Assembly: GCF_041956535.1 (NCBI RefSeq)
Contig: NW_027192207.1
Coordinates: 400,757 to 464,756, forward strand
Length of the DNA: 64,000 nucleotides
Reading direction: 5' to 3'
Source of the DNA: Calcarisporiella thermophila CBS 279.70
Lineage: Eukaryota; Fungi; Calcarisporiellomycota
Made by a program: the position numbers and the translations under genes. Of the stretch, positions 21,801-50,222 are shown piece after piece. The notes under the pieces were generated by a model. It worked only from the letters and a program-made list of their open reading frames with translations, ran no database searches and was not told where the DNA came from. Each line of letters opens with the position of its first letter. Position 1 is the stretch's first letter.

Positions 21801-21929
21801 GTCCTAATGCGACAGAAGAAGGAGCGAGAAGAGAGGGATACACGCATGGCGCAAAAACCAACCACAGAAACGGGCGAAACAGGACTAGCTGCTGCCGAAA
21901 CCGACGTGGAAATGGTGAATGCTTACTAA
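18801..21929 (+). CDS. RAD3: TFIIH 5'-3' Fe-S DNA helicase XPD/Rad3, multi-exon
   Basis: [84 protein letters not shown]. Confidence 0.97.
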
Positions 21930-22165
21930 CTATATCATCCTTCTTTCTCATAATAAACTATTGTACATAACCATTCCTCTCTATCTTTTTTTTTATCACT
22001 ATAAATATTTAATTTGCTCCAGTTACTATTTCTAGTCGCTAAAATATTATCAAAATCATTTTATTTATTATTTATGACTATCCTCCGGAACGGTATACAC
22101 CTTTGGAAAAGAAAGAAAACAGTTAATTTTTCTTCAAGAATCACCATTATATTTAAATGGAATAA

Positions 22166-22268
22166 AATTCTCAGAAAGTAGACATTCAACATTGCGTTAA
22201 CGCCTGTACACAATTTAATAGGCAACTCTGTCCGCCCGTCTACGTTGTCTTCCTCGAAATCACAATTA
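22166..22268 (-). ncRNA. snR70: Box C/D snoRNA snR70/U43 homolog (18S Cm1639-equivalent guide)
   Basis: GACGGGCGGA-CAGA (guide plus variant D') is antisense to SSU ACCGCCCGUC, with D+5 on the decoding-centre Cm. Downstream TGTGTACA can pair with the adjacent rRNA UGUACACA. Degenerate C box GTGATTT 22263-22257, D box CTGA 22174-22171, internal GTAGAC/GTCTAC pairing. Confidence 0.85.
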
Positions 22269-22384
22269 AATGAGAAAATAAACCTACCATAAACAAGGTT
22301 CCGCAAACATAAGCCTAATTAAAACAGCATAACGGTTAGAACTCTGTTTACACTTTGTATAAAAAGAGTAAAATAGAATCGAAA

Positions 22385-22465
22385 ATCTTCAGACAAGGCT
22401 GATTTTTCTGTCGATCATCTTATTCAGAGATCTTGGTGATATGGTCATAATGGTCATCATATAAG
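22385..22465 (-). ncRNA. Box C/D snoRNA with U24-type (25S Cm1437-equivalent) D' guide and snR41-type (18S Gm1126-equivalent) D guide
   Basis: C box ATGATGA 22460-22454; TATCACCAAGATCT-CTGA is antisense to LSU AGAUCUUGGUGG; TCAGCCTTGT-CTGA (D box 22392-22389) is antisense to SSU GCAAGGCUGA. The D+5 rule lands on the conserved Cm and Gm positions (rRNA sequences recalled). Confidence 0.85.
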
Positions 22466-22617
22466 AAAAAGTAGTAAAATAAAGCAGGATAATTACCTTA
22501 AGACATTTTGGAGTATATTTTAACAAAACGCGAAAAGAAATAAAAAAAGTGAAAATAGAGAAAAAGTGAAGAATATGAGAGAATAATAAAAAAGAGAGTT
22601 AAAGAGTTTGTTGCCTT

Positions 22618-22625
22618 CTTATATA
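22618..22625 (-). promoter_or_regulatory. TATA box of the snoRNA host gene
   Basis: TATATAAG about 27 nt upstream of a CTCTCTTTTTTT pyrimidine tract and the first exon. Confidence 0.6.
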
Positions 22626-22800
22626 GGGTAAAATGTAAACAAATCTTTGCGGAGATTGATTTGCTGCGCGATTTTTTAGATATCCCAGAGATATTTACTT
22701 TGAAGTGAACTGGATACTCAATTATAACTCCAACTAGTATACCATGGAATTTATTTCAGCAAATTCGATGTGCTATTTATATTGTATTATATTGTGACAA

Positions 22801-23110
22801 CTATAAAATAAGGCAATCCAGGCCACGCCAGTGCGTTCGTTTTGCTGAGCCAAAAGGATCATCACTACCCGCGCCGCCCCATACAGAGGGTACAAGATAG
22901 TCTCTAGTATTATTGATGTAGTTCATGATACTAACAATAGTGTATGCATAGTATAAGATATCTATCTGAGCCACTTGGGATACGGTAGAATACTTACGAT
23001 GTACATGCCTCGGACATTGGAATGTACTCCTTGTTCAGTTCTTCCTCCAATTTTTTATTATCCTCGAGAAGCTTCTGGAGCTTCGGGTCAAGTGTGCCAT
23101 TTTGCGTCAT
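22801..23110 (-). CDS. Heterotrimeric G-protein gamma subunit (2 coding exons; not in ORF track)
   Basis: MTQNGTLDPKLQKLLEDNKKLEEELNKEYIPMSEACTS|IMNYINNTRDYLVPSVWG...DPF...DCLIL*; intron 22997-22931; CAAX box. Confidence 0.92.
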
Positions 23111-32547: not shown

Positions 32548-33846
32548 TTATTCATTTAGGGCAATAACCGTCATCATGGCCAAACCGACAATCATGGCAC
32601 CAAATTCACTAAAGGCTTGCCGAAGATCTGTTGCGCGCTTTCCGGTTACTTCTAATAGCTCAGGAATCACACCGACTGTGGCAATGTAAATAAACCCTCC
32701 GGCAGTGAAGGGAATGACCAAATCGCCAGCGGACAAGTCAGGGATGCCGAAGAGAGCCGAGTGCTCCTTGCTCGATACCGCAGATTTAGTCCACTCTTGA
32801 ATGAGAATGCCGGCGATGGTGCCCATAAATGCACCCACTGCCGTGACGAATTGTGCAGCCATAGCACGCTGTCGCGAGAAGCCTGACTGAATAAGGATGG
32901 CATAATCGCCGACCTCATGTGGTATTTCGTGGAAGAAGACGGCTACTGTGGTAGTGGCACCAATAGCAGGAGAACTGTAAAATGAGGCAGCCATGGCGAG
33001 ACCATCAGTGAAGTTATGAGTCGCATCGGCAAGAAGATTAAGGTAGGCGGAGAGCTTTACACTCCCATTACCAGCACCATTTTTCTGTTGTGTCTGAACA
33101 GCATTTACGTCGTTGGCGTTAGTCTCAGGAGAGGAGGATCTTTTCCTTTGACGAAGACCATCCCGGGATGCCTTTTTCTTGGGGGACTTCTTGCTGCCAT
33201 TTGCCTTTCCGTTTCGTTTCTTCTCCTCTCCCGAATCATTCGAATATGTATGGTTAACTTCTTCATGTCCGTGGGCGTGTCCATGTGCATGTCCGTGGGA
33301 ATGTCCGTGAGAGTGTCCATGGGAATGAGAATGTGTGTGCTCGCCTCCGTTAAGCACTCTCATCATCTTATCCATCACGAAAAAGAAGCCCAACCCCCCG
33401 AAAATTCCCAGGCCTAGAATCACATTCTTCTTTTCATCCACTCGAACCATCACATCGCCCTCACCAACGTGCTCGCCCATGAATGTGTGTGGTAATAAGT
33501 GCAAGAACACGTCACCCAGTAGCCCACCCACTGCAAAACTAACTAGGGTGTTGAGTGAGGCTGGATCAATATTCGGCGGAACAAAATAGAGTAGCAAGTT
33601 TGGGATGATCGAAATATAAAACGTGCCAAGCAGCGAATTCACTGCCGGTCCGGCTGGAAACAGTACACTAAATATGTGCCGCATGAGTGAAACATCGTGA
33701 GGGGACGCACTGCATTGGGTTCCAGGGGCACAATGCTGCGAGTGAGGATGTGATGCAAAAGATGTTCTAAGCATTCCGAGAAGAATGAATGAGATGGCCA
33801 CATAGAAGACGGTGCAACGGTTGACCCGTTGAAAAATAGATCCCAT
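32548..33846 (-). CDS. YKE4: ZIP7/Yke4-type ER zinc transporter (intronless)
   Basis: SFAVGGLLGDVFLHLLPH, His-rich GHSH repeats, YLNLLADATHNFTDGLA, FFHEIPHEVGDYAIL, PFTAGGFIYIATV. Start taken at MGSIFQR. Confidence 0.94.
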   Translation of the reverse strand: MGSIFQRVNRCTVFYVAISFILLGMLRTSFASHPHSQHCAPGTQCSASPHDVSLMRHIFSVLFPAGPAVNSLLGTFYISIIPNLLLYFVPPNIDPASLNTLVSFAVGGLLGDVFLHLLPHTFMGEHVGEGDVMVRVDEKKNVILGLGIFGGLGFFFVMDKMMRVLNGGEHTHSHSHGHSHGHSHGHAHGHAHGHEEVNHTYSNDSGEEKKRNGKANGSKKSPKKKASRDGLRQRKRSSSPETNANDVNAVQTQQKNGAGNGSVKLSAYLNLLADATHNFTDGLAMAASFYSSPAIGATTTVAVFFHEIPHEVGDYAILIQSGFSRQRAMAAQFVTAVGAFMGTIAGILIQEWTKSAVSSKEHSALFGIPDLSAGDLVIPFTAGGFIYIATVGVIPELLEVTGKRATDLRQAFSEFGAMIVGLAMMTVIALNE

Positions 33847-34752
33847 TTTTATATACAGATTTTCAGCGGCAGGAAAAGAGCGTAGGTGACGTTGAAGGAG
33901 TATAATAAATATAAACAAGGAGCGAATGAGTAAAGAATGGAGAGCAGAGATGGTGCTGTGGCTAAGTAGAGATGCCGATCCCACCGTGTTATTTTGGGGT
34001 GACTGAGTATCGAAAGACAGCACAGAACGGCAATATTCTGTGAAGAGCTCGATGATTTCACACCAAGTCGATGAATAAAGCAGGGAGAATAAGAATACCG
34101 TGAGCCCTTGTCACAGGCCGAGTCATCGAATTGAAAATTTTCGATCTCCACGGCTCCTACTCGAATTAATAAAACTCCCCCTGTTGCTCCAAGAACCGTT
34201 TTTTCTTGACGAGTCTTGAATTCAAACCTTAATCAAAGGGCATCCTCTACTAAATGCGAAATAATAGTCTAACTTCTTATTATACAGTTTTCAGGATAGA
34301 CTTTACCCTGAAGTCACTGAAGAAAACATCGCTCCATCTTCCTTATCCGCCACTGCTACTATGAGCCCTTGCTTATGGCTTTATCGATTCCAATTTCTTG
34401 TAGAATCACAAGTGCTCGGATGCATGATGCTCACATGCTTTCAAAGCCCACTTTTCGTCATGCATTTTTTTGATGCGAAAGGGACATGACAGAATGATCC
34501 ATGTAGTCTCTCTGATAAAACTTTGCGTTTTTATCTCACGGTATATAATAATATTCTTGCTTTTTGATAATTAATACAAATTGCCCGGATTGATAAATAA
34601 ATTTCAGTGTCTTCTAAGTCCAAAAAAAAACATTTATATTTATTTTGTTCCTTCTAGTGTAATATAAAAAAACATACGAAGAATTTCCTCCTCAAGCTTG
34701 AAAAAAAAAAGTAAATTGAGATTAAAATGAGTGTAAGAACAGAAAGAGACGT

Positions 34753-48100: not shown

Positions 48101-50222
48101 TGAGTTAATCAAAGAAGTTGCCGGTTCAACCTGCTTAGCCAGTTTGGCGCCATCCACTTTAGGTTTAGCTAGGTCCCTGGTAGTGTCCTTACCCTTCGCA
48201 ATGTCCTGTTTGATTTCTTGCTGCGAAAGGTTGGTTTCATTTATACACGTGGCATCAGGATGATTCGGTGTTTCTTCCAGCACTATGTCTGTTGATAGCG
48301 TCTCGTGACTTTGCTTTTCGTTTGTAGAGTCAGCCTTGTTAAAGTCATTCGCTTGTTTAGCAGAATCTGCTACAGCGGTTTGCCCAACCACTGGGCTGAG
48401 TTGTCCTGAAGTCACCTTCTCTATGATCTGCTCTACCCTTTCTCGTTGGTCTACTTCAAAGTTAGCTATATTAGGCATGTCCTGTCTAAAATAATATCGA
48501 ATATAATCCACTAACCAGGGGAAGGATCCTTCACTTCGCACGCAGTTTGCTTTATCTCTAACAAATGCTCTTGCTTGCCAACCACCGCCTCAACCTCTAA
48601 CTCTCCATTTTCCGCATGCTGTGTCTCCGAAGCTTTTGCAAGATCTTTCGTGACTTCTCCATCTCTTGTGATGCCACGATGATGAGCGTAAGTCTTTTTC
48701 TTCTGCACCCGCTCGCGAGCCAGGCTCTTAGGAGTAATAATGGGTTTTTCCGGTTCACTCTGAGGGCTTGGTTCTGGAACGTCTGCGAGAGCCGTTGGAT
48801 TAGTTTAAAAATTCAGAAAGGTACAACTAATTCCTATTTACCGTGGCGACTAGATTGAATCTTAACCTGCCTTGCATCGACTTGCTTCGATTCTTTAGCA
48901 CCCTCCTCCGATACCGCATGTTGCCTTTGCGATGAAATCGTCTCTTTTTCCGGTAGGGTTTCCGCCACTTCTTCTACGCGTTCGACAGCGGTTGCCTCCT
49001 GCTTCTCTTCCTCTTGTTGCTTATGGATGTGCAATATCGAACCATTGGTTATAGCTTCTTCATCTGGCGAAACGGCTTCTCTCGTCTTCAATTGAGGCTG
49101 AGGCTCGCTGCTACCTTCTCTGGCCATGAGTGGACGCTGGTGTTCTACCACCACTGTCTGCTCCACCAGACCCTCCTCAGTTGATCCTTCTCCCTCTTCA
49201 ATCGTTGGCTTTAGTGGAGTAACCGACACCATCTCTCTCAACCTATTTTGCGATTGCAATGGCACTGATAACGAGCGCCTCGACGGAGCTGTCTCTTTCT
49301 CGAAAATATCCTTCTCGTATTCCAAATGAGCTTCATGTTTCCCGGGTTCAGCCGCCTCCTTCTTTTCAGACGCACGCGTCATTGTTGGAGGAGGTGGAGG
49401 TGGGTGGCGGGGTGGCGGAGGTGGGGGAGGAGGCACTGGCGGAAGGTTATTAGGCCCGAAAAATGTCGCCGCGCTGTTTCTATCGATGAAGGATGATTTC
49501 GAGAAGGAGGAATGCTCTCGCCTCTTCTCATCCCAGGTATACTGAGGGTTCTCCACGAAGGTTAAGGAGCTCCGTCGGCTATCCAATTCGCCCTGTTCAT
49601 CCTGCCTCTCCATCCTAGACCTTCTAGCCATGGCATCACTTGCTCTGAAAGCAGAGAGCAGCGATTTACGCCGCAAGCGTCTCTTGGTGGGCTCGGTGCC
49701 AGCCTTTCGGCTAGGATAGTCGATGTCAATTTTGTTTCCTGTGTGAAGCTGGGGTGAACTCTCGTGTGCCAGTGAGGAACCAGGCCGGGGATACCAGTAG
49801 GACATGGCATCTTTTTCCCAGCTCGAATCCCCCCCGCCGTCGATGGGCGAGGATGTTTTTAATGATACGGATTCGCTGTCTGTTTCGCAGGCCAATTCGC
49901 CCACTCTTGGCAGGACAAGCGTCTCCAAGGGGGTATCGAGCGAAAACATAAGCTTCCGCATATAGCTGGCAAATTCTTCGTCAAAGAATTCAGAAACCTC
50001 CTCTGGGATTATGTTGTCCAGGGGTGCTGGTTCGTCTTCTGGCACATCGACATCGGAGGGTGGAGGCGTGACGAAATCGTGCTTAGGATGCTTGTGGAAA
50101 CGGAGAAAGGAGAAGAGAGAGGTGAGCTTTTTCGGATGGCGATGTTGCTTAATATCATGGTCGGAAAGATGGTCATTTTGAGAGGATGCAGGGAGCGGAG
50201 GGAGGTCCTTTGCGACGGACAT
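45178..50222 (-). CDS. Large Rho GEF: long disordered N-terminus plus C-terminal DH domain, no PH domain
   Basis: RRHIIEEIVSTEENYL, FDLIFGFIPSL, FEAYVGYINNY, LEDYLIMPVQRLTRYCLLLNDLKEHT; stop at 45178-45180. Upstream exons (ORFs at 48834-50222, 48511-48708, 45941-48541) join via plausible GT-AG introns. Confidence 0.8.

Follow-up and report, generated by a model that had tools for sequence, protein, structure and literature searches.

A candidate non-coding host gene carrying two intronic box C/D snoRNAs between the RAD3 and G-gamma genes of Calcarisporiella thermophila

What is encoded in the short interval between the RAD3/XPD and G-gamma genes of Calcarisporiella thermophila? In the stretch of 64,000 nucleotides that we analysed (the window), the plus-strand gene RAD3/XPD extends to 21929, as judged from exon matches and Helicase_C_2 relatives. 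The G-gamma gene, recognised by matches to PF00631 over two exons, lies on the minus strand and has its stop codon at 22801. A sequence-only reading had placed between these genes a hidden non-coding host gene whose two introns each carry a box C/D snoRNA, and we find the unit in that position. Our analysis indicates that it is probably an independent RNA polymerase II gene that has no protein product and would serve to supply a box C/D snoRNA from each of its two introns.

The unit extends on the minus strand from 22625 to about 22040. It consists of a TATA box, a pyrimidine-rich stretch, three short exon-like pieces and two introns, as follows.

22618..22625, minus strand: TATA box TATATAAG, preceded by ACCCTA; putative function
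22497..22598, minus strand: exon 1, with its predicted 5' end at the CTCTCTTTTTT tract
22315..22496, minus strand: intron 1, 182 nucleotides, with donor GTAATT at 22496
22385..22465, minus strand: box C/D snoRNA 1, recognised by its boxes and guides
22288..22314, minus strand: exon 2, 27 nucleotides
22101..22287, minus strand: intron 2, 187 nucleotides, with donor GTAGGT
22166..22266, minus strand: box C/D snoRNA 2 (snR70/U43 type), recognised by its boxes and guide
22040..22100, minus strand: exon 3, with AATAAA at 22069-22064 and a predicted 3' end

The pyrimidine run CTCTCTTTTTT starts at 22598, which is 27 nucleotides after the TATA box. The sole ATG of exon 1 begins the frame ATG-TCT-TAA (22506-22498), which is followed by G22497 and then by the donor at 22496. 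Intron 1 has the branch sequence CTAAC at 22339-22335 (branch A 22336) and the acceptor AG at 22316-22315, and intron 2 has TTAAC at 22126-22122 (branch A 22123) and AG at 22102-22101, which places the branch A 21-22 nucleotides from the AG in both cases. Each intron holds one box C/D snoRNA flanked by good donor, branch and acceptor signals. The D boxes are CTGA at 22392-22389 in snoRNA 1 and CTGA at 22174-22171 in snoRNA 2. From the end of the D box, the acceptor G lies 74 nucleotides away in intron 1 and 70 in intron 2, and the branch A lies 53 and 48 nucleotides away, respectively. Exon 3 converges on the RAD3 stop at 21929.

The architecture described in the sequence-only reading is thus present as drawn, including the TATA box, the pyrimidine tract, the two intron lengths, the 27-nucleotide exon, the Met-Ser-stop frame that ends 1 nucleotide before the first donor, and the distances of both D boxes from the acceptors. 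The introns had also been called about three times the local norm, and they are, because the G-gamma intron is 67 nucleotides long and successive RAD3 coding matches are separated by about 44-64 nucleotides. Coding potential was checked piece by piece for each exon. Taken exon by exon, the host unit contains no ATG-started frame of at least 20 codons, and frames read through the host introns have no Pfam match. The neighbouring G-gamma gene (window 22801-23110, minus strand) has exons of 38 and 43 codons that are joined through a split Ser codon across its intron. Each of these exons corresponds to one half of PF00631, and the C-terminal residues of the protein are CLIL.

To assign targets to the two RNAs, the organism's own rDNA was located on contig C53 with two short primer-like patterns, and the guides were tested against this rRNA. 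SnoRNA 1 carries a C box (ATGATGA, 22460-54), a D' box (CTGA, 22427-24), a C' box (GATGA, approximately 22420-14) and the D box given above. Its D' guide (22441-22428) forms 14 base pairs, one of them G-U, with LSU 1531-1544 and places C1535 at position 5, and its D guide (22402-22393) forms 10 base pairs with SSU 1125-1134 and places G1129 at position 5. LSU C1535 is the U24/SNORD24 site (yeast 25S C1437), and SSU G1129 is the snR41 site (yeast 18S G1126). In Neurospora crassa, 18S-Gm1122 is listed as the function of snR41-II and 26S-Cm1418 as that of U24 (PMC2780460).

SnoRNA 1 therefore joins a U24-type guide for LSU C1535 to an snR41-type guide for SSU G1129. The cores of its guides are also found in the Rfam consensus of SNORD24 and Afu_455. 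At the stringency used, each of the two guides occurs only once in the 28-Mb genome. A genome search at one mismatch yielded no other credible U24-type guide, so the hybrid RNA may be the only guide for the LSU C1535 site in this genome. A second exact U24-type match (C5) lies in GC-rich, coding-like sequence with no snoRNA boxes around it and was rejected.

SnoRNA 2 has the guide GACGGGCGG at 22240-32, followed by a D' box (CAGA, 22230-27), a C' box (ATGTTGA, 22192-86) and the D box at 22174-71. The guide forms 9 base pairs with SSU 1643-1651, in which C1646 takes the fifth position. This nucleotide is 161 nucleotides from the 3' end of the SSU rRNA. Yeast 18S C1639, in an rRNA of 1800 nucleotides, is likewise 161 nucleotides from the end, and so we take C1646 to be the snR70/U43 site. 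A guide for this decoding-centre C (yeast 18S C1639, human C1703) located upstream of an internal D' box is what characterises snR70 and SNORD43. No second copy of the guide motif was found in the genome at the stringency used, and the target of the guide is a site of the decoding centre that is universally conserved.

For the degenerate C box of snoRNA 2 there are two readings, GTGATTT at 22263-57 and AGGAAGA at 22254-48. The sequence-only reading chose GTGATTT, which is present at that position, but in comparison with a relative found in metagenome data (contig L008, described below) it is the other heptamer that occupies the homologous position. AGGAAGA aligns with the ATGATGA of L008 and has the same 7-nucleotide spacer to the guide, whereas in the relative the counterpart of GTGATTT is the terminal-stem strand. 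In the cluster I snoRNAs of this genome, a C box of the form GGATGA(G/C), with no canonical U, is frequent, and AGGAAGA is thus one change from a locally used form. The guide region of snoRNA 2 also takes part in a 6-bp inverted repeat, formed by GTAGAC, which overlaps the 5' end of the guide, and GTCTAC, which lies just before the D box (window 22237-22242 and 22178-22183, minus strand). In the predicted fold the repeat extends with GGAAG/CUUUC. L008 does not share it, and it may have arisen by chance or represent an internal stem.

How much weight do these features bear? Box C/D elements are present in both RNAs, with the C box of snoRNA 2 being the degenerate one. If a guide is required to have at least 9-10 base pairs directly upstream of D or D' and a known methylated nucleotide at the fifth position, the three guides qualify with 14, 10 and 9 base pairs. 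Among the 399 CTGA motifs in the window there are seven chance cases of perfect box-adjacent complementarity of 10-11 nucleotides, and the length of the helix alone is therefore not decisive. It is the boxes, the fifth-nucleotide rule and the three known conserved sites in combination that are decisive for predicting that both are real snoRNAs. One further C/D-like candidate in the window (48680-48763) is GC-rich, lies beside an ORF and looks like a chance occurrence. By folding energy the two snoRNAs do not surpass shuffled sequence, a result to be expected of C/D snoRNAs.

A search for Rfam covariance matches had been proposed as a check, and it yields sub-threshold matches at most. The window contains no match at gathering level. 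At relaxed thresholds snoRNA 1 matches SNORD24 (22 bits), snoR17 (29 bits) and Afu_455 (17 bits), whereas snoRNA 2 has no match. A search of the whole genome with the SNORD24 family returned nothing. As a control, the snoRNAs of cluster I match SNORD52, SNORD65, snR76, snR75 and SNORD27 in the expected order, all of them below gathering. Since these clear snoRNAs also fall below gathering, sub-gathering scores count for little.

The cluster I host gene was found through the guide for 18S A28 and offers a comparison within the same genome.

L036:350-2190 (G000:C16:447461-449301), plus strand: cluster I host gene, same genome

This gene has a TATA box (TATAAAAAG) followed 34 nucleotides later by a CT-rich stretch, and the distance from TATAAAAAG to the CT-rich stretch is similar to that at the snR41/snR70-type locus. 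Its exons are 46-54 nucleotides long. Its seven introns of 172-198 nucleotides hold one C/D snoRNA each (snR78-77-76-75-74-73-73, in this order). The final two intron units duplicate each other almost exactly, and the sequence after the last AG restarts with GTAAGT.

In the seven cluster I introns, the distance from the D box to the branch A is 51, 50, 49, 57, 48, 62 and 51 nucleotides (median 51). When the two introns of the present locus and the two of L008 are included, 11 of 11 intron units have a spacing of 48-62 nucleotides. [quoted passage not shown] In N. crassa, the distances between snoRNAs and splice sites resemble those of animals (PMC2780460). The C. thermophila genome encodes an Aquarius/IBP160 homologue (G000:C14:310802-312442, plus strand; L028), recognised by five exon matches to PF16399. 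For the introns predicted here, the rule of animals that places a snoRNA about 50 nucleotides from the branch point holds too.

A relative of the locus was sought in metagenome data with two scans. The first, which looked for the hybrid snoRNA 1, gave no match. The second used a pattern composed of an snR41-type D guide, TGAT and an snR70-type guide at suitable spacing, and gave two matches, one of which is a true relative (contig L008). The other match (L009) is GC-rich and was rejected as a chance match. L008 carries the same two snoRNAs in the same order, in two consecutive units of the form GTAAGT...CTAAC/CTAAT...AG. Its introns are 216 and 176 nucleotides long, and the D boxes lie 54 and 52 nucleotides from the branch. 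No other homologous locus was found, and this one is truncated on its 3' side by the end of the contig.

What is shared between the two loci is concentrated in the snoRNAs. The 17-nucleotide block GACGGGCGGACAGAGTT of snoRNA 2, which spans the guide, the D' box and beyond, is identical in L008, as is the C' box. The L008 homologue of snoRNA 2 has a weak match to SNORD43 (16 bits, E 2.9). A global alignment of the two loci is uninformative, with exons and intron flanks not alignable, and the 27-nucleotide exon 2 is not conserved. Its counterpart in L008 consists of the 4 nucleotides AATT between the first acceptor and the second donor (L008:210-213), which makes the introns there juxtaposed. 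Juxtaposed introns are described for fungal snoRNA clusters in a published survey (PMC3596301). The relative of snoRNA 1 in L008 and the N. crassa RNA CD9 each have the snR41-type guide only and no U24-type guide. Because L008 does not carry the U24-type guide, the U24/snR41 hybrid is specific to the present lineage.

The upstream neighbour of the L008 unit is a divergent ORF, which makes it impossible for the unit to belong to a 3' UTR of that neighbour. This observation bears on the strongest alternative to an independent gene, in which the snoRNA introns belong to the 3' UTR of the G-gamma mRNA, have no separate promoter and release their snoRNAs from the G-gamma pre-mRNA. G-gamma is encoded on the same strand, and its stop codon is only 175 nucleotides upstream of the TATA-like motif, an arrangement in which read-through could supply the transcript. 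However, an AATAAA at 22755-22750 lies 46 nucleotides past the G-gamma stop and before the TATA box, and the combination of a TATA box and a CT-rich stretch is the same as at the cluster I host, while the homologous unit in L008 follows a divergent neighbour. Introns located far downstream of a stop codon expose an mRNA to NMD, and we infer that two of them far past the G-gamma stop would expose the mRNA of a signalling gene in this way. The cluster III hosts that have been published are separate non-coding genes (PMC3596301). On balance, we regard an origin of the snoRNAs from G-gamma pre-mRNA as unlikely.

Still less probable, in our estimation, is a mono- or dicistronic precursor that is not spliced at all but is processed by endonucleases and exonucleases as in Saccharomyces cerevisiae, leaving the splice-like signals unused. 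Complete sets of donor, branch and acceptor signals flank each snoRNA, with the branch A 21-22 nucleotides from the AG, and the spacing between D box and branch stays within 48-62 nucleotides in all 11 units. The genome is also rich in introns, and outside the Saccharomyces group the clusters in the published survey are intronic (PMC3596301). Finally, it is very improbable that one or both snoRNAs, and snoRNA 2 in particular, are decaying pseudogenes in a dead host, since the points in favour (a C box of AGGAAGA or GTGATTT in place of RUGAUGA, the missing Rfam match, and a fold no better than shuffled, though this is expected for C/D snoRNAs) are outweighed by the identity of the guide and D' block and of the C' box in a distant relative, by a guide for its decoding-centre site that has no counterpart elsewhere in the genome at the stringency used, by the many cluster I C boxes that also have no canonical U, and by intact splice signals.

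We therefore favour the independent host gene, which would operate as follows. A primary transcript would start about 30 nucleotides after the TATA box and undergo two splicing events. The excised introns would then be debranched and trimmed by exonucleases to the cores protected by snoRNP proteins. SnoRNA 1 is predicted to guide 2'-O-methylation of LSU C1535 and SSU G1129, and snoRNA 2 that of SSU C1646. The D boxes, at 53 and 48 nucleotides from the branch, would occupy the position that couples snoRNP assembly to splicing in animals. The spliced exon RNA of about 190 nucleotides would be a by-product.

Does the locus belong to a known class? Three snoRNA clusters have been surveyed across fungi, including cluster III, composed of snR41, snR70 and snR51 (Luo et al. 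2013, PMC3596301). The cluster III snoRNAs of Euascomycetes, Basidiomycota and the zygomycete Rhizopus oryzae are all intronic and their hosts are non-coding, and 83 introns were confirmed by EST or RT-PCR in that survey (PMC3596301). The C. thermophila locus has a feature of this cluster, in that an snR41-type snoRNA is followed by an adjacent snR70-type snoRNA on one strand. It also has, as judged from the DNA, one snoRNA per intron, canonical splice signals and exons that carry no long ORF. Thus, the guide order, the placement of the snoRNAs and the short, poorly conserved exons agree with those of the published fungal clusters. It differs from them in having no snR51 and no U45/U55 introns, and in that its snR41-type RNA has only the G1126 guide, with a U24-type guide in the other position.

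The sequence-only reading had found no snR51 guide here, and our results agree, as the interval between G-gamma and RAD3 contains no further box-adjacent rRNA guide. A search of the whole genome for an A100-type (snR51) guide gave no credible snoRNA, and one candidate (C4) was rejected because it has no C box. The proposal that the locus is an intron-encoded form of the snR41-snR70-snR51 cluster is supported by the sequence matches to the organism's own rRNA targets, by L008, by the cluster I host and by the literature (PMC3596301, PMC2780460). The locus is predicted to be of a known kind, and its twists are the missing snR51 and the U24/snR41 hybrid guide. The design had been presented as hidden, a description that does not fit, because it is the published norm in fungi other than Saccharomyces (PMC3596301, PMC2780460).

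The hosts of N. crassa were named UHG-like and likened to gas5 (Liu et al. 2009, PMC2780460). As in C. thermophila, they are non-coding and have short ORFs only, an snoRNA of about 80 nucleotides has its 18S G1122/G1126 guide at the D box, and the snoRNAs lie at animal-like distances from the 3' splice sites. Cluster III of that species comprises CD9 (snR41-II, 18S-Gm1122), CD17 and the exon-encoded CD6 (PMC2780460). The partners in N. crassa are therefore a U45-type RNA and an exonic snR51, and U24 is a separate gene there, whereas the introns of the host described here number just two and its exons measure 27-100 nucleotides. The S. cerevisiae snR41-snR70-snR51 cluster shares the adjacent 18S G1126 and 18S C1639 guides in the same order, but it is unspliced and processed from a polycistronic precursor, its snR41 also guides A541, and its third member is snR51.

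[quoted passage not shown] Its exons and introns are far smaller than those of the vertebrate hosts, and the hosts are unrelated in sequence. The likeness to GAS5/UHG had led to the suggestion that the host RNA is a 5'TOP transcript degraded by NMD, and both parts of this suggestion are best treated as analogies. Assigning 5'TOP status requires a mapped start site, at a C with an unbroken run of pyrimidines after it, and growth-dependent control of translation. The CT-rich stretch that follows the TATA box is found at the cluster I host as well. NMD of the spliced RNA would be purely conjectural, as it is deduced from the three-codon ORF upstream of two junctions.

The best relatives of the ORF for a ZIP zinc transporter (window 32551-34023, minus strand) share about 60% identity with it and come in equal measure from Mucorales, Mortierellomycotina and Glomeromycotina. 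A query with the last exon of RAD3 retrieved only distant fragments with at most 82% identity, and exact look-up of five window ORFs found nothing. Two contigs fetched through the RAD3-exon matches contained no snoRNA motifs. The ZIP and RAD3 results together point to an early-diverging, Mucoromycota-like fungus that has no close relative in the collections searched.

A broader reading of these findings is tentative, and we would put it somewhat below an even chance. It holds that cluster III was cut to two introns and rewired in an early-diverging lineage, such that the A541 guide of snR41 was replaced by the U24 guide for C1437 and snR51 was lost or moved, and that splicing-coupled assembly of C/D snoRNPs predates the split between fungi and animals. 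On this reading, the spacing of 48-62 nucleotides in every host intron examined, together with the Aquarius homologue, would mean that position-dependent assembly is older than that split. The predicted locus is of value chiefly for annotation, since it would explain the methylation of three conserved rRNA sites in a fungal lineage that has been poorly sampled and would escape both protein-gene callers and Rfam at curated thresholds. It adds a data point outside Dikarya to the fungal snoRNA clusters in non-coding hosts and opens no new question.

Two minor features of the promoter region deserve mention. The presumed start region (window 22590-22603, minus strand) contains a perfect 14-nucleotide complement to LSU 384-397 of the same organism (TTTAACTCTCTTTT). 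This segment is of low complexity and has no adjacent box, and it probably matches by chance. In addition, a telomere-repeat-like ACCCTA(A) motif adjoins the TATA box at window 22626-22631 on the minus strand (ACCCTATATAAG), and the same motif is found in exon 1 of the cluster I host (L036:425-433, ACACCCTAAAC). We presume that it resembles the Tbf1 or telo-box sites reported at the promoters of snoRNA and ribosomal-protein genes.
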